NCBI GenBank assembly: GCA_021613535.1
Contig: CP075495.1
Span: 8,742,001 to 8,806,000, forward strand
Direction of reading: 5' to 3'
Length of the DNA: 64,000 bases
Source of the DNA: Adineta vaga
Taxonomy: Eukaryota; Animalia; Rotifera
Below, one piece after another: positions 29,690 through 48,315 of the stretch; the stretch's first letter is position 1, and every line of letters starts with the position of its first letter. A model generated the notes under the pieces. It saw nothing but the letters and a program-made list of their open reading frames with translations. It had not been told where the DNA came from and did not search any database. The position numbers and the translations under genes are program-made.

Positions 29690-32303
29690 ATGTTATCTTC
29701 AAGAGAATTTGTAAGTAGATCTATTTCGTTTGTAATTCATAAAATAAAATCTGTATATTTACTTGAATTAGTTCCTATAAGAATAGGAGAAATACTTTTC
29801 AATAGTATCAAACTTAATGACCATATATTACCAATTGTATCTTCGTCTCTGAGTTAGGAGAATTATTTGAAAAAAAGGAACTCATATATTTTACTTCAAA
29901 ACTATTGTTAATCGAAGAATAATGTATATGAAGATAAGATTCCTTTTTATACTAAAAAATTTTTACTTTGAGTAAAATAAAGCATCCATACTGCACTTCG
30001 ATAATGTTGCATGGAGAAAAAATATAGATTGATATTAGACAACTAGTGACTTAGTCAAATACTGATAAGGTGATAAGGAAGAAAAGTATTAATATGCGTG
30101 TTAATGTCAGATGAAAATTTATGTTACAAGAAAAATGATTCTATTTTAAGAAATACATACTTTTCAATATGTTCCTTTAATATTTGAATATAATTTCTAT
30201 CATGATGGTTCAACTTAAAGACATGGTAAAGAAACGTTTTCTTATTTCTCATTCATTCACTTTAGCATATATGTAAATAAAATTCGATGTTGGAGAGAAA
30301 ATTTTGTTTTTTATTATGCATATTTATGAAGTTTGTCACAGATGCTAAATTCACTTTCGATTATATATTTGAAAACACAAATCAGTACAATGAAAGTGGC
30401 ATTTAAAAGTTTTCGATTACTGGTATGAATTCACACATATATACATACACTCTAGATAAAGTTTTATTTGAGACAATACTGGAAGTATACGTTGAACGAC
30501 GTATAATACTTTCCATATTGTGTAGTGAAAATTGCTCAAGAAAAAGAAATACGAGTTAGTAATTTTAAGGGAGGGAGCAGTTTGTTCTTTTTTTTCATAA
30601 AACAATTTGATGTTTATAAATTTCTTAATAATACAAATAACATGATCTGATAGGATAATCGTATGTAAATAGTAAAAATTGAGTGAGAACATCATTAATA
30701 GCTATATGTATAAACTTTATGTCAACATTGTAGAATAGACATGGAGCCATCCAATAGTAAGAATATCTAATCATCTCTTATCGATGACAATGATGAGAAT
30801 AGGTAACTTTTAAGAATATTTTTAAATCTAACTACTAGATTAGTGCTCGAGATTAAGTGATTTGATGGTAATTGGACTAATTATCACTATACTGAATTAC
30901 TGATCAATATATATACTATCTGTTTATCTCTAACCAGTTTTGAATATCATTGTAGTCTTCAAGCTTCGTTTAGAGAGTTCTTTCTCAGTAAAAATTTATC
31001 GAAAATGATCATTTCTTTCTTCTTCTTTTTCATTCGCTTCTATTATTGTACATAAACTATGATTTCATTACATAGAAACGATCTATTCCAATTGGACTTG
31101 CAATTACTAGTCTTACAATAATTACAATTTTTTACATTGGTACTTCTTCAAACAGTGATTATACTAGTTTTCCAAAATTTCGACTACCTAATGTTAACAA
31201 TCATACCGAATCAGTCGTTTCAACTCGTATCTTTTGTCTCATACTAACATCACCAAAGAACTTTCTTACTCGTGCTAAAGCTATCCATCAAACATGGGCA
31301 TCACGATGTGATCGACACTTTTTTGTCACAGAAAATGCAACAGAAACACTCACATCTGAACAACTCAATTTTACAAAACAGATATCAATTGCACCAATCA
31401 GCAATATCATCCCCGGTTATGATCATTTAACGCAAAAGTCAACATTAGCCTTTTTGTTTGCGTATAAGAATTATGCGAATGATTTTGATTGGTTCATCAA
31501 AGCAGATGATGATACATTTGTGATTGTTGAAAATCTACGAGGATTTTTGAGCAAACAAAATGCATCTGAACCTGTTACATTTGGATATAATTTTAAGGTA
31601 ATTGATTTTGACTTCGTGAAATTTTTTCTTACATGATAACAACTGATGCTAAGAATAATGGTTAACTTGTTTTGAATCGTTGCAGAGTTTTGAAATATAT
31701 TGTCAACTGAAACCTTATCTGAACGATTAATACACAATAAATCTTTTAATCAGATGCTTTATTGTTGAAAAAGTCACCTTTTTTTGACTTTCAATTCGTT
31801 TTTTTTTCATTTACAGGTTATCGTTCCGCAAGGATATCATTCAGGTGGAGCATCCTATGTATTAAGTCAAGAGTCACTACGACGATTTCATCGAGCTCAT
31901 GAAGATTCAACAGCATCATGTCGCACAGATGGTGGTGCCGAAGATGTTGAAATTGCCAAATGTCTTCGTACTCAAGGTGTTTATCCAGGCAAATCAATCG
32001 ATAGTTACAATCGTGAACTATTTCATCCACTTCCATTTGCTGATCATTTTCGTGGCTCATTTCCAGATTGGATGTTTTCGTATGCAGAAAATCCACTACA
32101 AACGGTACCCTACTATTTGACAATTTGAAATGTTTGATTGAATAGTAATGTATTTTGTTTTTCCTTAGAATTATAACTGTTGCAGTGATCAAACGATATC
32201 ATTTCATTATGTGTCGCCTGAAGAACAATACCTAATGCATTTTCTATTATACAAAGTTCGACCAATCTTTCAATTCGAAAAAATTCACGGAAAAGTCTGT
32301 TAG
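29690..32303 (+). CDS. C1GALT1: Core-1 beta-1,3-galactosyltransferase (T-synthase-like), paralog a; exons ~29690-29710, 31076-31597, 31818-32104, 32169-32303
   Basis: MLSSREF|KRSIPIG + TM segment; RIFCLILTSP....RAKAI..TWASRCD; DWFIKADDDTFVIVENLR; GYHSGGASYVLS; EDVEIAKCL; RELFHPL; CCSDQTISFHYVSP. Confidence 0.9.
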
Positions 32304-33732: not shown

Positions 33733-34528
33733 TCACGATACATATTTCATTCCAAGATGATCGATGATGGTACTCAAACCTTCCATGCATTTTCGTAAAT
33801 ATTCACTGATCACTATCGATCGAACGTTATGAACATCGGATGAACAAATGTGATTTAATTTGTTTGAAAATACCAATCGATCATTCATATCATACACTGA
33901 TTGCCATGATTGAGAATACACATTCAGAACATTTCGATATCCACACATCATATCTGTTTTTAAAATAATTTGAATACTTTTGAAGTAATTATCGATTTTT
34001 TGCTCAAAAAAGCCCTTGAGATTACGCAGATCATCGATGCTGTTCGAAAAGTAGATCATTGCATTGTGTGCTTCTAACAACAGCTTTATCAAATACTCCT
34101 AAAAAAACAAGGCATATTTCATAAAGTGTTTCGTCAATTTCATAACTATACTTTGCCGATGTTATTCTGTTGAAAGAAATGAAGATGGTAGTACGAAGAT
34201 GGGAGACTAGCATGAGTGCTGTTCATCTCGATGTTCACATATTGATTTATTTTATCAATTGTTATCCTCTGTTTGATCTACATAATACAGGAGATGACAT
34301 TTCATTTCTGTACAATCACAAATGAACATCACTTACTTCTCGTTCAATCTCGAGTGTTGTTCGAGCAATTTCTTGTGCTTTGCGTGCAATAGTTACGAGT
34401 TCATCTTTGACACACAAGATACCATCATTAATTTGACACGTATCATCAATGATTGATCGTTGTTCACTCAGTGAAATCAAACACACGAATGAAAGATAAA
34501 AAAAGGTAATTTTTGGAAAAAATAACAT
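33733..34528 (-). CDS. Secreted four-helix cytokine/prolactin-like protein, subfamily A copy A1 (exons 34528-34337, 34277-34152, 34098-33733; ~227 aa)
   Basis: Signal peptide MLFFPKITFFYLSFVCLISLS, CQINDGILC loop, canonical phase-0 GT-AG introns giving one open frame, and paralogy with A2/A3/B1/B2. The gene model is solid; the fold and family are inference. Confidence 0.75.
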
Positions 34529-35698
34529 AGATCGAGCTAAAATTTCAATTGTATCGATTTCTTTAGTCAAGTTAAAAGTTTTTTTCGTACTTGTTAACAA
34601 AATTTTCGTTTAGTTGTTGTGTTAGATTTACGGTCGGTATCAGCGGATCAGATGATGTTGGATACAATGTTGTCGAATATATGAGTGTTATAACAATGAG
34701 TTACAATAAGGAAAAACTAATGAGTTTTGTCTCTATTTCTCTCGTAAGAAATTTAACTACTATTCTGAGATTTGGAAAAATCAGTTCATTTAAATACTAA
34801 CCACAGTCAGCCTACGAGTCTTGTATATCCTCCACATAAATCAACAGTATATGATATATTCAAATAAAGTTGTCTCACAGATGTCAATTGGTTCAATAGT
34901 CTGATTCTTATCAGGAACGTGGTTACTTTGTTGCGCATAGTTTGATGTAAAATAAACTTTTTTGATTGACTCGTTATTTGTCTATAGTCACAAATCAAAA
35001 GACAAATATAATCTGTCTATAGGATTGATTCATATTCTTTTTGAGTACTAAATTAATATCGAGGCCGAAATATCTCACGACGATATATATACATGAGTGT
35101 TTTCAGATTGTCAACGCGTATTTAATTATTGAAATCTATATCATAGCACTGTTCAAGTTGCTCTGTGGTTTTATCAATACGTAAGTGTTTGCTATTGTCT
35201 ACAGTTCTAACTTCATTTTAGTTGTCATTACTTTATCCTTTATATTTAATAAATACAATTTCTGTTTTTATGTATCTGTATATGGGTTGTGTCTCATATT
35301 TTTATGAAAGTACATTGATTCAATAAATATGTACTCGAAATGAAGTCATAGAGATAACATTAATGTACACACTTTTACTTCTATTCAAACACGAACTACC
35401 AAAATCATTCTAAATATTAGTTCATATAATCAGGTATATTCACCTCCCTCACTTGTCACTGCCAGGTTTAGTCTTTCCTATCCAATAACTCGCGTATATT
35501 GACATATTTCTATTACAAACTCGACAACTTTTCGTTACCGTTTCTTTTCCATGAATAAAGATGTAGTAAATGCATGGATCTGATTCATCTACGTATCATC
35601 CGCTTCATATTCCAACATTTTTATCAGTCATTTTCATCAGTTAACAGTCTTTATTGAAATCATCATCACCGTCTTCTCACATCATCATATTTAGTTTA

Positions 35699-37112
35699 CT
35701 ACAAAAGTTTCTTTTCAAGAATGTCAACCGTATAGTTGATCAGTTCCATCCATTGTCGTAACAATCGAACAGTAATCACGATTTGAGTATGATAAATGCA
35801 TGATGTTATGTCACGTTTTCGTGTTCTTCCCACCTCGATTCCGTCGATGTCATTGGTTGACGACCATTTTTCTGCATAGGTATGAAGAATATCTCGATAG
35901 TTGCAGATCATACCTTCTTCTAAAAGCTGTTCAACCTGATGAAATAAAGCATTGTCACCATCTTCTTTCGAAGCCGTTTCAGCTTGTCGAAGATTGACAA
36001 TTGATTTGTAGAGATAACTGACTGCATAATCAGCTTCTTTGATCAGATGAACTAGATCACTCTGAACAAAACGAACAAACACGTTCATAGGTGTGAAGAA
36101 GTGAACGAAATGCACTGCTTACTTTATCGATATTGTTCATGTGCATGAACTGATCATGAGTTTTAGATGATGGAAAAGTGATGTTGAGGATGGTTGTTTT
36201 GTAGATGATGTTATTTTCGAGTGTGACCTTGTTTGGATCTCGTCGATGCTAGAAAGAAGATGAATAGATGGGTGATTGTTTGACGAAATGTTGTGCGAAA
36301 GAATATAGTTACAATGTTTTGTTCGATTTGAAGTGTAAGAGGATGGATTTGATTTGCTGTTGTGCGTATTTCTTGGAGTACCTCGCGAGCACAAAGAGTA
36401 ATTGTAGTTGTAGGACAAATATCACGATTCACTTTCCCATGTTCTTTACTGTCTACTGACAGAAACAGATTTACCAAAATGATGAAGATAAAAGTACGCA
36501 TTTGTACCATATTGCACTATATCAACAAAAATAGTGAAGTGCTGATGATTCAGCTTTAACTTTATCACACTATTATTTAAAGTCTATACAATCAGTGAAG
36601 TCCCTGACAGCCGATATTCTGATTTTCTTTCTTAGTACAATAAGATATCACGATCTCTTCTAAAACTGTATGCATAGCTGTCAATTATTGAGTCTCTAAT
36701 ATTCCTTATCCTAAAAAACCATTGCAGTGTAACGCAATAAACTCACACCTTTATACAAATGTATACGATCACTAACTAAACACTTGCACACAGATCGACG
36801 ACGTCGTTGATAAGAACAAAATAACAATTTATCTAATGCTTAACTTATATTTTCTACATAAACTGAGGCTCAGAATAGTAAGTGATCATATCAGCGTTTC
36901 TAAAAGTTTTCATTATCACCACTCAAGGAAAAATGTCAACAGCAGAAACATTCATAAAATACGATCTTATAGCTATTAGATGCATTTCTTCGAACACTAC
37001 ACACATACATCTCTAAATACAATATGAACATTTCTTCATCGTTCTACAGTAGTCTCTTCTCATTCAGAATTATATTAGTTATACAAAAGCGTCTTACCAA
37101 TTTCAAGACCAT
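35699..37112 (-). CDS. Secreted four-helix cytokine/prolactin-like protein, subfamily B copy B1 (exons 37112-37098, 36516-36313, 36248-36123, 36061-35699; ~235 aa)
   Basis: MVLKL|CNMVQMRTFIFIILVNLFLSVDS signal, ICPTTTITLC loop, 126-nt middle exon as in subfamily A, phase-0 introns, AATAAA ~45 nt after the stop. Confidence 0.75.
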
Positions 37113-37192
37113 TTGAAAGCCAACTGAACTGTAGAATTTGATGATCACTGCCACAAATATTCTTTCTGAGTCTTAATAGTCACATTTCACTC

Positions 37193-37202
37193 CTTTTATA
37201 TA
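37193..37202 (-). promoter_or_regulatory. TATA box of B1
   Basis: TATATAAAAG ending 81 nt before the B1 ATG. B2 has CATATAAAAG (44190-44199) at identical spacing although the surrounding sequence has diverged. Confidence 0.6.
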
Positions 37203-37218
37203 CAATCACATTCCCTAT

Positions 37219-37744
37219 AAAACAATCTATATCATGATTATCAAAATCGACAACACTGTTGACATGATATTTCTGGTATAAAAACCAACGTCGTTGACGT
37301 CGCATTCTACGTTTATTGTCTTGTGATTATGGCGTTTGTTTTTGTGCTTAACTTGGAAAAATACGAGATCGACTATATTTTTTTGAGAGTTGGACATAGA
37401 AATGAAATGATGGATGATGAACAAATATTGTTGTCTTCATTTTAGACGCAACAGTTGATATGAGTTTCTTGGAAAGAAAGTGAAAAAGAGCGGTTAATAA
37501 ATACATGATGATGGAAAAAAGAAGAAGATTAAGGCGAATTAGGTGGAAAGAGTCGTGTTTTCAGACATAGATGTGATAATGAAAGTGGTATGATATTTTA
37601 GTTCTGAAGAAAGATGCTGTATGATTTGTTAAGTGTAAATGAAGGCTGATATTGTAGTGGAGAGATGAATCTGATATGAAAAGAGAAGAAGTGTAAGATG
37701 AATGAGTATTGACAACATTTACTTAGATTTATTCAAAATTGAAA
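37219..37744. repeat. Near-identical duplicated upstream block of B1 (second copy ~44258-44784, upstream of B2)
   Basis: Direct sequence match from aaacaatctatatcatgattatc to attcaaaattgaaat, with only scattered substitutions. Confidence 0.9.
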
Positions 37745-39121
37745 TCTATGGATAGTGTAATAAATATGTATAATAGTATAATTTCGAATAGTCTAGTTCA
37801 CCACTGGTATTCACAATACTTATTCTGACTGAAGTTCTCGGAAAAGAAAAGGATTAAAAACACACCCATACTTCGTAGCTTATCTAAAATCTGTATTAAG
37901 TTTCAACTTTGTCCTGAATTTGACAATAGGCTTTACTTTTTTCAGCTTTGAATACTGAAAAACAGAAAATTTACGAGGTTTTAGAAACCAAAACAAAATA
38001 CTGTCACTGTGTTGTTTTTTTAACTTTGGAGAGTGATGACAAACTAAGTTCATTGTTTTGTAGTGCTTAAAAAGTTCGATTTCATAAACACGATTAGAAT
38101 TGTTTTGCAGGATAACTATTTATATGAAAATGCTTTTTCTATTATTGTGTTGATCAAAAAATACCATTTGATCATATCATTTGGAGAATGATTCCGTTTG
38201 AAATGTCTCATCATTGAGATCTAGAATAGATGTTTTGATGCGTATCTTATCGAAAATGAGATAGTAAATCATTTCAAAGATAACACATGGAATAACAGTT
38301 CACCATACATCTTTTATAATCTTATCTTACTATTATGGAGTTATAGAACCGTTAAAAGTAAACTATACTGGATAAGAAAATCAATATAACATTGAAACGT
38401 GTTGTTCATGCTGTTACTAATGAATTTATTCTAGCAATGTAAGAAGAATAATATCTGTCAAACTTAGCATGCCATTTCATATATAGATAACAGTAATACA
38501 AACGAGAATTAACTTTAGTTCGTAAAGAAGTAAAAATCCCTTTTAATTGTAGATTTTAATCATGACGATTTTCAGAATGGCTTATATAAGAATAGTTGCA
38601 GTAGAAGTAACTTAGACTATTTGAGAAATGAAAAAAAAACAAATGCATAAGAAAAATTAGTAAAGACATTACAAAGAGTAAACGAAACAATTTTATCCAT
38701 GTATATTATAGTATAATTTTCAAGATACTCAACTAGTTATTATCTTCTGACTACGAATCCTCATACTAATTGATTCAACTGGAAGTCTATCAAGAGGATA
38801 GTGACACTAGCTCCTTATGTTAGATAGCATTCGTGGGACTATAATTGTCTTAATAAACAAACCAGATCGTTTTGATACATTCAATCCTCTAAACAACATC
38901 AACAATGCTTTTAGGACAACTATATATTTGAGATACACGAGACGAATCTTATTTAACTTTTGTTTTGATCATTAAGTCAGTAACTCTTCAAATGCTAATT
39001 AATATTAGTAGTCTAGTTGTACTACTCTGTTTACACGAACGCGCATCAATCTTCAATTTGATGATTACTGTGATGAATACAAATACCGCAGTTATCCTAT
39101 AGACAATTCCTATATTTACAT

Positions 39122-40800
39122 ATCTTTCTTTATTCGATAAACAAACAAACAAACAAAAATATCAACATTGCATTTACGACATATCATTCACAAAAAGCGA
39201 TCACATCACATCTTGATTTATGTTACTGAACCTGCAGAATACTCATCAAACATCAACAAAATCACTAACCAAGTTTCCCTTCCAGTTTTCCAATCACAGC
39301 AGTCAAATCTTCCATCCACTGCCAAAGGTGTCTACCTATCACAATCGATCGAACACTATGAACATCAGACGAATCAGAATGAATCATCTTCGAAAATTCG
39401 ATTCGATCATTGACTTCATACATTGATTGCCATGATTGAGAATACACATACAATACATTTCGATATCGACAAATTATTTGATCTTTCAGACTTGTCTGAA
39501 TCTTCTTAAAACGATCATCAATTTTTTGTGCAAAAAAATCGTCGAGATGACGCAGATCATCGATGGTATTCGAAAAGTAGATCATTGCATTGTGTGCTTC
39601 TAACAACAGCTTTATCAAATACTCCTGAAAAACAAGGCATATTTCATAAAGTGTTTCGTCAATTTCATAACTATACTTTGCCGATGTTACTCTTTTGAAA
39701 GAAATGAAGATGGTAGTACAAAGATGGGAGACTAGCATGAGTGCTGTTCATCTCGATGTTCACATATTTATTTAGTGTACCCATTGTTATCCTCTGTTTG
39801 ATCTACATAATATACAAGATGACATTTCATTTCTGTACAATCACAAATGAACATCACTTACTTCTTGTTCAATCTCGAGTGTTGTTCGAGCAATTTCTTG
39901 TGCTTTGCGGGCAATAGTTGCAAGTTCATCTTTGACACATAACAGACCACGATTAATTTGACACATGTGATCATTGATTGATCCTTGTTCACTCAGTGAA
40001 ATCACAAATACAAAGTAAACAATAATGGTAATAAGTATCATGTTCATGGATGCCACAGGCATTGATTCAACTAAAACACACAGAGATCATCGCATTGTTT
40101 CATTGTTCTATCTCATGTTTAACATTCGGTTGTTCTTACTTTGCTAATATTTTGAATGGTGAGTCTAGCTCTTGGTTCAGATCAACAGACGATCAACGTC
40201 GAAAGTAGAAAAGAATGATCTAAATATCATGTCAAACATGTATTTTGAATATGAATGAATGAATGAATGAATGAATGGAGATGAGAAAAACCACGGAAGA
40301 AGATTCACAACAAGAAAACAGGAAAAAGACACTACCTTCTCTATCTATCTCATTCTCTGGAAATATGATCATCGCTCTGACGATTCAAGTGATAAATCAC
40401 GTAATATATACTGGTAGTAGCTCAAGCTACCCACTCGCTTCACTTATTTTTTTCCAAAATCAGTGTTTGATGAAGTCAAGTTTTGGAAAAAACCTACTTT
40501 TCTTCGATTTTGCAATGAAAGATAAGGCTAGTGTTCAATATGACGCGATTTTTGTTGTGAATGATATTGATTGTCATGATCAATAGTGAGTGATTGGTTC
40601 GATTGAGAAAATATTATGATAGTGAGATAAGAATCGGATAGCAGACATAGTCTGAGTGGGTTTGAAATCTAAGATAAATATCGATAGTATTGATCAAGTC
40701 TGAGTGGTTGTTGCAGTGTTGCGTGGAAGAATGGTGTGTATGATTTTGAGAAAACCCTAGATGAAAATCAGGCAAAAATGTATCAAACGATATGGAAAAA
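39122..40800. repeat. ~1.7 kb segmental duplication carrying A2 with its 3' UTR and upstream region (second copy ~47379-49037 carrying A3)
   Basis: Colinear near-identity with a constant 8253-nt offset across the CDS; the (TGAA)n microsatellite is longer at ~40252-40276 than at ~48499-48512. Confidence 0.92.
39265..40062 (-). CDS. Secreted four-helix cytokine/prolactin-like protein, copy A2 (exons 40062-39862, 39802-39677, 39624-39265; 228 aa)
   Basis: Signal peptide, CQINRGLLC, helix KDELATIARKAQEIARTTLEIEQE|IKQR, loop NSTHASLPSL, and helices EYLIKLLLEAHNAMIYFSNTIDDLR, KIDDRFKKIQTSLKDQIICRYRNVL, RSIVIGRHLWQWMEDLTAVIGKL. Confidence 0.75.
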
Positions 40801-41619: not shown

Positions 41620-43145
41620 CGTACTAGCATCAAATCAATGAAGGGGAACAATGAAAAAACTCTGGAGAGAGAGTATATATATAATAAGTTTATTACCAAT
41701 TGGATACATTATAGAAGAACTTAAAATACAGGAAAATTTAGTTTTCATAAGATATATTAAAATTTTACTTTTTCGCAATAATATTCCAAAACTTTTAAAT
41801 TTGGACTTTAGCTATAACCGATATCGGAAGCTATGATGACTATTTAATTCTCTATAGGAATGTGCTTAGAATTTAGGTTTTACTCGTAATATCCAGAAAT
41901 TGCTTTCTATATCATCTTTGTTATAGATTCAACAATGACGACATATTTCGTCGCTGTAGAAAGGTTTCATTTCTTTCCAGTCAGATAATACAGTCTTATA
42001 GCGTTAGATCTTTCGTATATAGTGCGATGCTGATTCAATAAAGACAGAAGAAATTCGACACCGTTAAAAATTTCGAAGAATTTCAAGTAAAGCGAATCGT
42101 TTCCCAGAAAAAAATTTGAGTTCAGTGGTGTTATGAAGCCTAAAATTCTTTCAGATTCGACAGTTACCAATTTATTTTATAGAAAATCGTGCACAAGTTA
42201 ACATTTTCTTAAAGAGTTGTTTGTTATGTCGTCGTTCGAATCAAAAAATCTTTTGAACTATTGTGTGTAAATCTATCTTTCATCGGTAAATATTATTAAT
42301 CCATATTATCTTAAAAAACTATGCGTATTGTTTTAATTAATTCAAGACTCAAAAGCTCAAAGTTCGTGATTATGAAAATGATCACAATGGTCCATTTTTA
42401 AGGCATAACGCATTTTAACAATTTCTCTAGTATTTTTCGACAAAAATAGTGCATTTTAACGGACAAAATGGTTTAGCTACGGAAAATAATCCATTTTAAT
42501 GACCATTTCTCCATTATTTACTTGGTAGGGTATAGTCGTACATGCATTTTATCACTTTCACGAAATATCATGAAGTATCATCACATGAAACTGCAAAGTA
42601 ATATCTAGCCTTGAGGATGCCGCGCATTCAGGTATCTAACAAATTTCATGAATTATTCTTATGACTTCAAGATACACTTTAGAAAAAACAGTAGAAGGTT
42701 TTTTTTACAAATGATAATAATAGTTTGTTCGTCGCTCATTTATTTTGATCTGCTAGTTATGCACTTACGCTACGTAAAGGAAATATAATTGTAAATGGGC
42801 TATTTCCTTCTTTTGTTGAAGGTATCTCATTGATACTGATATTGTTAATCAGGACATGCACGTTTTGCATTGGCTTATATATATTGATATAGTAATCTAA
42901 TAAGACTAGAAATTTTCTACGTCTTCGTCCTTTATAAGGAACGAGATAATAAACGCATGGATCTGATTCATCTACGCACCATTGTTTTAGACATTCACAT
43001 ACTTCTTATTCAACTTTGCCATCATTCTTTAGATTCTCATACTCCTGGATTCAGAAATCATGTCATTCATTCATTCACTTTCACCAGTTAACAATCTTTA
43101 TTGAAATCATCATCATCGTCTTCTCACATCATCATATTTAGTTTA

Positions 43146-44109
43146 CTACAAAAGCTTCTTTTCAAGAATGTCAACCGTATAGTTGATCAGTTCCATCCAT
43201 TGTCGTAACAATCGAACAGTAATCACGATTTGAGTATGATAAATACATGATGTTATGTCACGTTTTCGTGTTCTTCCCACCTCGATTCCGTCGATGTCAT
43301 TGGTTGATGACCATTTTTCTGCATAGGTATGAAGAATATCTCGATAGTTGCAGATCATACCTTCTTCTAAAAGCTGTTCAATCCGATGAAATAAAGCATT
43401 GTCACCATCTTCTTTCGAAGCAGTTTCAGCTTGCCGAAGATTGACAATTGATTTGTAGAGATAACTGACTGCATAATCAGCTTCTTTGATCAGATGAACT
43501 AGATCACTCTAAACAAAACGAACAAACACGTTCATAGGTGTGAAGAAATGAACGAAATGCACTGCTTACTTTATCGATATTGTTCATGTGCATGAACTGA
43601 TCATGAGTTTTGGATGATGGAAAAGTGATGTTGAGGATGGTTGTTTTGTAGATGATGTTATTTTCGAGTGTGACCTTGTTTGGATCTCGTCGATGCTAGA
43701 AAGAAGATGAATAGATGGGTGGTTGTTTGACGAAATGTTGTGCGAAAGAATATAGTTACAATGTTTTCTTCGATTTGAAGTGTAAGAGGATGGATTTGAT
43801 TTGCTGTTGTGCGTATTTCTTGGAGTACCTCGCGAGCACAAAGAGTAATTGTAGTTGTAGGACAAATATCACGATTCACTTTCCCCTGTTCTTTACCGTT
43901 CGCAAACAGAAGTAAAAGTATGAGGATAATAGCACGGAATGCTGGCACATTGAATGTCTAAATAAATCGAATTGATACTTCATACATTTATTAGTCATTT
44001 TTTTCCAACGATTATGTTTTCTATTATATCTAGCGTTTATTCGGCGAATATCTCTTCTCATTCAGGTCTACATCAGTTACTAATGATATCTTACCAATTT
44101 CACGATCAT
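43146..44109 (-). CDS. Secreted four-helix cytokine/prolactin-like protein, copy B2 (exons 44109-44095, 43957-43760, 43695-43570, 43508-43146; ~233 aa)
   Basis: MIVKL|TFNVPAFRAIILILLLLFANG signal. The mature region is almost identical to B1 (constant 7447-nt offset) with the same intron positions. Confidence 0.75.
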
Positions 44110-45935: not shown

Positions 45936-47105
45936 ATGGATATCGTTTATAGAAACTTGTCTTTTAGGAATAAAATATATTTTATATTAATTGGTATTCT
46001 GCTAATTACTAGCATTTTAGTTACAATCATATATATTCGCAATCATAGAAAGAAATATTCTACGAGTCCATTGGAAATCGATTTCTATGGTGATTATAGT
46101 GATACTCATGTATTAACAACACGTATATGCTGTTTTATATTAACAGCACCAAAGTATTTCCTGACTCGTGCAAAAGCAATTAATGATACATGGGCTTCAC
46201 GATGTGATCGATATTTTTTTGTTTCAGAATATGCGATTGATATGATGACATCCGAAGAACTTAATTTTACTCAGCACATACCAATTGCACCATTGAAAGA
46301 ACTTAATGCTGGTTATACACATTTAACACAAAAATCAACTCTATCATTTATACATGCCTATGAAAATTATCTGAATGATTATGAATGGTTTGTTAAAGCA
46401 GATGATGACACATATTTGGTTGTAGAAAATTTAAAAGCTTTTTTAAGTGAACAAAACGCATCTGAACCCATCACATTTGGATATAATTTCAAAGTAATAA
46501 TTTATTTCTTTGCATGAAAAGTTTAAAAAATGTTACTTGCTATTAAGCAGAAAATAACTAAGACAATAACAGTAAACGTTTTCTTGGAAATCTAGTTGAA
46601 GGAGAATAATTTGAGTTTGTAGCGATATTCCTTCTTGATATAGTTATTTCCTATTTTATTTTTAGATTCTAGTTTCTAAAGGATATCATTCAGGTGGAGC
46701 AGCATACGTACTCAGTCGAGAAGCAGTACGACGATTTTATGAAGCTCATCATAATCCGAACTCAAAATGTCGCAAAGATGGTGGTGCTGAAGATGTTGAA
46801 ATAGCAAAATGTTTACGTAGAGAAGGTGTCTATCCAGGAAAATCATTGGACGATCATAATCGTGAACTGTTTCATCCACTTTCATTCACCGATCATTTTT
46901 ATGGTTCACTTCCTAATTGGTTAGAAAAAAATGCTGAAAATCCATTAAAAGTTGTAAGTATATTCTAATCAGATTATTTCTGTTGATCCAACGATACATA
47001 TTCCATTTTCAGTACTACGATTGTTGTGGTGACCAAACTATTTCTTTTCATTATATTCCGCCTGAAGGTCAATATTTGTTGGATTTTCTAATATATTCAT
47101 CTTGA
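45936..47105 (+). CDS. C1GALT1: Core-1 beta-1,3-galactosyltransferase (T-synthase-like), paralog b, 3 coding exons
   Basis: Type II TM; RICCFILTAP..FLTRAKAINDTWASRCD; EWFVKADDDTYLVVENLK; GYHSGGAAYVLS; EDVEIAKCL; CCGDQTISFHYIPP. Catalytic-domain intron positions are the same as in paralog a. Confidence 0.9.
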
Positions 47106-47517: not shown

Positions 47518-48315
47518 CTAAACAAGTTTCCCTTCCAATTTTTCAATCACAGCAGTCAAATCTTCCATCCACTGCCGAAGGTGTCTACCTATCACAATCG
47601 ATCGAACACTATGAACATCAGACGAGTCAGAATGAATCATCTTCGAAAATTCGATTCGATCATTGACTTCATACATTGATTGCCATGATTGAGAATACAC
47701 ATACAATACATTTCGATATCGACAAATCATTTGATCTTTCAGACTTGTCTGAATCTTCTTGAAACGATCATCGATTTTTTGTGCAAAAAAGCCCTTGAGA
47801 TGACGCAGATCATCGATGGTATTCGAAAAGTAGATCATTGCATTGTGTGCTTCTAACAACAGCTTTATCAAATACTCCTGAAAAACAAGGCATATTTCAT
47901 AAAGTGTTTCGTCAATTTCATAACTATACTTTGCCGATGTTACTCTTTTGAAAGAAATGAAGATGGTAGTACAAAGATGGGAGACTAGCATGAGTGCTGT
48001 TCATCTCGATGTTCACATATTTATTTAGTGTACCCATTGTTATCCTCTGTTTGATCTACATAATATACAAGATGACATTTCATTTCTGTACAATCACAAA
48101 TGAACATCACTTACTTCTTGTTCAATCTCGAGTATTGTTCCAGCAATTTCTTGTGCTTTGCGTGCAATAGTTGCAAGTTCATCTTTGACACATAACAGAC
48201 CACGATTAATTTGACACATGTGATCATTGATTGATCCTTGTTCACTCAGTGAAATCACAAATACAAAGTAAACAATAATGGTAATAAGTATCATGTTCAT
48301 GGATGCCACAGGCAT
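47518..48315 (-). CDS. Secreted four-helix cytokine/prolactin-like protein, copy A3 (exons 48315-48115, 48055-47930, 47877-47518; 228 aa)
   Basis: Near-identical to A2 with a few amino-acid changes (RTT>GTI, LDDFF>LKGFF, IIC>MIC, LWQW>LRQW, GKL>EKL, terminal G>V); splice sites intact. Confidence 0.75.

Follow-up and report, generated by a model that had tools for sequence, protein, structure and literature searches.

A bdelloid rotifer gene family predicted to encode long-chain class I helical cytokines

The window analysed here, a stretch of 64,000 nucleotides from Adineta vaga chromosome 2 (GCA_021613535.1, contig CP075495.1, positions 8,742,001 to 8,806,000 of the forward strand), carries five members of one gene family (A1, B1, A2, B2 and A3), and searches of the genome (100.8 Mb, 6 contigs) bring the A. 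vaga total to ten, with three copies on chromosome 5 and one each on chromosomes 1 and 3. B1, the gene in focus, is a real gene whose four exons join into an open frame of 235 amino acids, with the same exons in the NCBI annotation; its introns (581, 64 and 61 nt) have GT-AG borders and are all phase 0. Features of the window are as follows, with helices and loops as predicted for B1.

31221..32251, plus strand: glycosyltransferase gene, second copy, its DNA 71-75% identical to the first (45936..47095); Pfam is blank for the one exon scanned
33733..34528, minus strand: A1, three coding exons (34528-34337, 34277-34152, 34098-33733)
35699..36061, minus strand: B1 exon 4, with helices B and C, CD loop, helix D and stop
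35813..35818, minus strand: Lys-Arg pair in the disordered CD loop, found in 12/15 B-like rows of the family alignment versus 8/81 others
35903..35905, minus strand: codon of Cys140 in helix C, invariant in 110/110 family rows
36123..36248, minus strand: B1 exon 3, the AB crossover with two short helices; both flanking introns are spliced in B2 RNA
36313..36516, minus strand: B1 exon 2, with the remaining putative signal peptide, Cys11, Cys19 and helix A (hydropathy and model)
36393-36391, minus strand: B1 Cys19 codon
36417-36415, minus strand: B1 Cys11 codon
37098..37112, minus strand: B1 coding exon 1 (5 codons), read from sequence and shared with the NCBI model, outside RNA coverage
39265..40062, minus strand: A2, exons 40062-39862, 39802-39677 and 39624-39265; fused to B1 by NCBI
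43146..44109, minus strand: B2 (NCBI I4U23_008503, 233 aa), exons 44109-44095, 43957-43760, 43695-43570 and 43508-43146; the copy seen in RNA
45936..47095, plus strand: Fringe/Galactosyl_T glycosyltransferase gene (core-1 galactosyltransferase-like), within the cluster
47518..48315, minus strand: A3 (NCBI I4U23_008505), exons 48315-48115, 48055-47930 and 47877-47518

Although the NCBI model I4U23_008502 (466 aa) contains B1 exons identical to ours, it fuses them to the upstream A2, and fused models resembling A2-B1 (35699-40062) also occur in A. ricciae and Rotaria sordida (P0008, P0009, P0031, P0039). The fused NCBI models are probably annotation errors, and the A2-B1 model is corrected here. 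Exon 2 of B1 holds in-frame ATGs that could serve as start codons without exon 1. Intron 2 is spliced out in contigs of three presumed RNA runs and intron 3 in those of two, and splicing of neither was seen in the contigs of a DNA run. Because all nine RNA variants match alleles of B2, as does a 5' loose end, this evidence of splicing and expression belongs to the twin gene B2 rather than to B1. The two are 97.7% identical from inside exon 2 through the 3' UTR (B1 35624-36452, B2 43071-43899), whereas their signal peptides and first introns differ and the upstream region is merely 88% alike, a pattern that, judged from the sequences, looks like recent gene conversion confined to the mature part. 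A spliced A1-like contig is also present among the RNA contigs; at the start of exon 3 (window 34249-34337) it differs from the genome in 28 letters and looks like either a diverged allele or a copy absent from the assembly.

Other copies have neighbours of their own. Fringe/Galactosyl_T genes are interleaved with family genes on A. vaga chromosomes 2 and 5, in A. steineri and in A. ricciae (L006, L011, L012). By eye, the chromosome-1 copy adjoins an ORF that resembles aldo/keto reductases, has no introns and looks bacterial (L004, minus strand), and the chromosome-3 copy adjoins an ankyrin plus ADP-ribosyltransferase-like ORF (L008:315-1202). One A. ricciae B copy (L012:10001-10591) has an in-frame deletion of helix C and the CD loop, which joins helix B to helix D.

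Relatives were found in A. steineri, A. ricciae and Rotaria sordida. Searching 1.84 billion proteins with a family profile returned 130 matches, 44 of which were inspected, including all 22 weakest; each of these was a family member, either complete or in the form of exon fragments, and no vertebrate hormone was among them. A range limited to bdelloids rests on the taxon-named matches, since most carry no taxon label. In the tree, subfamily B is a supported clade from three Adineta species. Coding exons number four in B and three in A, and the introns after helix A and before helix B are phase 0 in the B1 model and in B2 RNA, although intron 2 is missing from two chromosome-5 copies and absent from many relatives. 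Three cysteines alone are conserved in the family, namely Cys11 (100/101 rows), Cys19 (100/102) and Cys140, while an AB-loop cysteine occurs in 1/100 rows and helix D cysteines in 10/105, at scattered positions. Hydropathy marks residues 9-27 of the open frame as the sole hydrophobic stretch in B1; it is signal-peptide-like, and no membrane segment was found. The Lys-Arg pair of the CD loop, kept in subfamily B, could be a convertase site.

At the level of sequence, no link to known cytokines was found. Pfam gave scattered chance matches only, whether searched exon by exon, at full length or with each member (full-length searches used the NCBI proteins; exons were searched singly), and none of 30 members matched the IL6, LIF_OSM, CNTF, IL11, GCSF, IL12 or Unpaired models. 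Sequence searches of the PDB with one protein and three profiles yielded coiled-coil noise and no GH/PRL chain.

For the structure, AlphaFold2 was run twice on the mature B1 portion of the NCBI protein (pLDDT 82.6 and 86.3), which gave main helices at residues 20-48, 87-118, 124-148 and 174-205, plus two shorter ones in the AB crossover. As modelled, B1 has the long-chain class I helical cytokine fold, running up-up-down-down with long AB and CD connections, and structural alignments span residues 18-207. Against 48,161 PDB representatives, the best 13 chains were long-chain cytokines and the best 8 of IL-6 type: IL-11, LIF, CNTF, viral IL-6, OSM, IL-6 and CLCF1 scored Z 13.3-15.1, as compared with 12.7 for placental lactogen and 10.6-10.8 for GH. 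A second structure search placed G-CSF at Z 16.7 (rmsd 2.6, 165 residues aligned), CNTF at 16.3, IL-11 at 15.4 and LIF at 15.1, with the best prolactin at 14.4 (rmsd 3.3, 177 aligned). IL-6-type chains and G-CSF hence lead prolactin by 1-2 Z units and GH by 4-6, while values of Z 13-16 lie little above the reach of helical bundles in general. Prolactin aligns more residues than the IL-6-type chains (177-181 versus 142-171); the best structural matches are 5-13% identical in sequence, with prolactin at 7-10% and LIF at 10-13%. Foldseek gave no match at E<=0.001, and a shape search of the ESM Atlas returned unrelated bacterial folds only. In the language-model search of the same Atlas, however, all neighbours were four-helix cytokines. 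The top match for B2 was a chordate cluster (0.95) in which 24% of members carry Hormone_1 and whose family set is common to 11/30 matches, followed by arthropod and mollusc clusters (0.94); A3 found an arthropod cluster, cardiotrophin-1 and a LIF-type cluster. So low a share of Hormone_1 is no mark of GH/PRL, since LIF and cardiotrophin clusters carry 16-18% as well.

The conserved cysteines may be read against LIF, which has Cys12, Cys18, Cys131 and Cys134 and a bond between 18 and 131 (PMC3865251). LIF structures align with B1 at an offset of 0-1 from residue 8-13, which brings Cys11 and Cys19 onto LIF Cys12 and Cys18. Cys140 would be bonded to one N-terminal cysteine, most likely Cys11: in two natural genes Cys19 is lost while Cys11 and Cys140 are kept (one of these ends at a contig edge). 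The one gene without Cys11 is uninformative about pairing because it is broken by a stop and a frameshift. An isolated Cys11-Cys19 loop seems doubtful as it would leave the invariant Cys140 unexplained.

These findings bear on the original prediction, which saw subfamily B as following prolactin and growth hormone motif by motif and exon by exon. All rotifer motifs that it quoted are in place on the minus strand, and part of the proposed colinearity stands. Across nine prolactin structures helix A aligns at an offset of 5, which puts His35 onto prolactin His30, and helix D is roughly in register, its end offsets of 9-12 lying within one to three residues of the 12-13 implied before; such agreement is expected between two proteins of one fold. 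The N-terminal disulfide loop, by contrast, does not correspond: at an offset of 5, Cys19 and Cys11 fall on prolactin residues 14 and 6, so that, read from the first aligned residues only, these cysteines sit 2-3 residues off prolactin's Cys4-Cys11. Nor does the LLEEGM match hold beyond A. vaga, being private to its B genes, with Gly137 in 0/13 other B-like rows; Pro12 recurs in 0/7 of these, and His35 is B-specific (7/7 versus 5/94). The 27 matched positions show no special conservation: outside B they score 0.42, with residue-matched random positions at 0.41 (p=0.39), and within B the two values are 0.69 and 0.61 (p=0.12).

As to gene structure, the five-codon first exon and the intron after helix A are present in the gene model, yet they are not specific to GH/PRL. 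Genes for IL-6, IL-11 and G-CSF likewise combine a short first exon with phase-0 introns at the corresponding places. Since, in addition, A genes have no short exon and many relatives are without intron 2, the gene structure cannot discriminate. The differences from GH/PRL that had been conceded are real, there being neither an AB-loop to helix D nor a C-terminal disulfide, no last intron, and a phase-0 intron 1. None of the four cysteines of vertebrate GH/PRL, which are conserved and join the AB loop to helix D and close a C-terminal loop (PMC9546618), is present in the family. The Hormone_1 model found 0/30 members at E<=10, its exon scans were blank and it had no match at the family loci in the genome, which largely tells against the claim, and IL-6-type cytokines and G-CSF fit equally well or better. 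The complete cytokine topology, for its part, speaks against the idea of chance heptad-pattern matches. What survives of the proposed homology is thus the superfamily, i.e. long-chain class I cytokine; membership of the GH/PRL family, which is held to be chordate (PMC7308720), is unsupported.

If the family encodes cytokines, the pathway that answers them in other animals is hard to find in A. vaga. Exon-wise searches of its genome with four STAT and four JAK models were blank or spurious, and so were genome searches with three receptor models including IL6Ra-bind, Lep_receptor_Ig and EpoR_lig-bind. As the JAK and receptor models, EpoR_lig-bind among them, are vertebrate-biased, the STAT result is the stronger negative. 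Weak matches to JAK/STAT models were inspected and belong to other genes. The same search found most of its controls, namely SH2 (64 matches), fn3 (151), SOCS box, Runt and CSL. RHD (NF-kB/NFAT), intended as a positive control, was blank in the same genome, which weakens the argument from absence: either NF-kB/NFAT have been lost too, or some families escape the search. Of the SH2 loci inspected, none is of the STAT type, though a few have no readable motif. A WSxWS pattern at the DNA level gave 227 matches, and among the 100 listed none falls clearly on a listed fn3 match. One SH2 plus SOCS-box gene pair exists in the genome (C6:8718455-8719042, C3:7726590-7727172). Going by these sequence searches, JAK/STAT is more likely than not to be truly absent from A. 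vaga. STAT has gone undetected in flatworms as well (PMC13203501), and the Dome/gp130-type receptor is regarded as the ancestral bilaterian form that predates the split of protostomes and deuterostomes (PMC1963337). We found no reports on the JAK/STAT status of rotifers in a literature search that reached few subscription journals.

Taken as a whole, our data suggest that B1 and its nine A. vaga paralogs probably belong to a bdelloid family of secreted long-chain class I cytokines that cannot be assigned to GH/PRL. The family may descend from an old bilaterian stock that also gave rise to Unpaired, the IL-6/G-CSF group and GH/PRL. B1 would be secreted, with a LIF-like bond from Cys11 (most likely) to Cys140 that holds the N terminus against helix C, and a spare cysteine would be available to form a dimer or to bind a partner chain. 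In IL-12, a cysteine joins the partner chain. By analogy, the protein might then act as a paracrine or body-wide ligand whose helix A/C and A/D faces cluster a surface receptor of FN3/Ig type. Because no JAK/STAT was detected, a non-canonical output seems somewhat more probable than one that runs via a divergent JAK/STAT pathway missed by the search. More tentatively, bdelloids could have lost JAK and STAT while keeping and expanding long-chain cytokines that signal by a route undescribed for the class.

Other readings deserve consideration. B1 might be a diverged protostome member of the GH/prolactin lineage, split off before the vertebrate disulfides arose and serving as a growth or osmoregulatory hormone. 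Prolactin does align the most residues, the mature length (207) is prolactin-like, helices A and D match in register and amphioxus GH-like proteins are also without the four cysteines (PMC9546618). The top Atlas match of B2 (0.95) is moreover chordate with 24% Hormone_1, and its family set recurs in 11/30 matches, yet LIF and cardiotrophin clusters carry a comparable share and subfamily A finds the arthropod cluster and cardiotrophin on top. Set against this are the failure of Hormone_1 in 0/30 members, the lack of a GH/PRL-sized distant match among the 1.84 billion proteins, the low Z of GH (10.6-10.8), the restriction of LLEEGM to A. vaga B, matched positions no better conserved than controls and the absence of a detectable EpoR-type ligand-binding domain from the genome, so that we consider such a lineage unlikely.

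A cytokine-derived fold might instead have been reused in a non-signalling secreted protein of mucus, adhesive or defence, possibly glycosylated by the neighbouring galactosyltransferases. Fast divergence, repeated tandem duplication, the undetected pathway components and the recurrent Fringe/Galactosyl_T linkage (A. vaga chromosomes 2 and 5, A. steineri, A. ricciae) would fit. Old synteny explains the linkage, however, the protein has no repeat or mucin-like region, and the RNA contigs, which cannot rank expression, are low in number and depth and do not point to a structural product made in abundance; we rate this reading as quite unlikely. A convergent amphipathic four-helix bundle without cytokine descent appears more improbable still. 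It would account for the lack of a significant sequence or Foldseek match and for the bacterial folds of the Atlas shape search, but not readily for a model that matches the rare up-up-down-down topology over its full length, both crossover loops included, when ferritin-like bundles cover residues 85-207 only (Z <9), nor for the putative signal peptide, the phase-0 introns on either side of the AB crossover or the language-model score of 0.95.

Preferring the cytokine family, then, we see in it a new family of a known kind of protein, the class I cytokines, as judged from the model. Reports on this family or on any helical cytokine of rotifers were not found in the literature searched, most subscription journals lying outside it, and a 2026 survey lists IL-6-family cytokines in vertebrates only, the ligands of invertebrates being insect Upd and a shrimp lectin (PMC13203501). 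With the rotifer family, the long-chain cytokines gain a spiralian representative, and sequences become available with which the superfamily can be rooted. Should JAK/STAT be truly missing, the family would also allow the role of a class I cytokine that lacks its canonical pathway to be addressed directly.

Among known systems, GH, prolactin and somatolactin share with the rotifer proteins the fold, a similar length, the short first coding exon (subfamily B) and introns after helix A and before helix B. They differ in having five to six exons (PMC9546618) as opposed to four (B) or three (A) coding exons, and in the phase of intron 1, which is phase 0 in the rotifer. Drosophila Unpaired 1-3, the sole protostome long-chain cytokines that we found described, are alike in being a small paralog family of secreted ligands; Upd, however, uses Dome, JAK and STAT, all three undetected in A. 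vaga, and the Unpaired model had no match in its genome. The IL-6/gp130 family and G-CSF (LIF, OSM, CNTF, IL-11, CLCF1, IL-6) resemble the rotifer protein in their long-chain fold (Z 14-16.7) and in phase-0 introns that bracket the AB crossover. Unlike them, the rotifer protein has a longer, helical AB crossover and no FxxK site-III motif, identity is 5-13% with no Pfam match, and no gp130-type domain, JAK or STAT was detected in A. vaga. With LIF in particular it shares two cysteines in register before helix A plus a helix C cysteine, albeit one where LIF has two, and none in the AB loop or helix D. Unnamed mollusc and arthropod clusters of the Atlas lie beyond the reach of the rotifer family profile at E<=0.001, but are alike in feature scores (0.91-0.94) and length (190-230 aa), with IL6 in 11% of the mollusc members. 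They suggest that unnamed cytokines of this type are common in protostomes, which tempers the surprise of finding a set of them in a rotifer.
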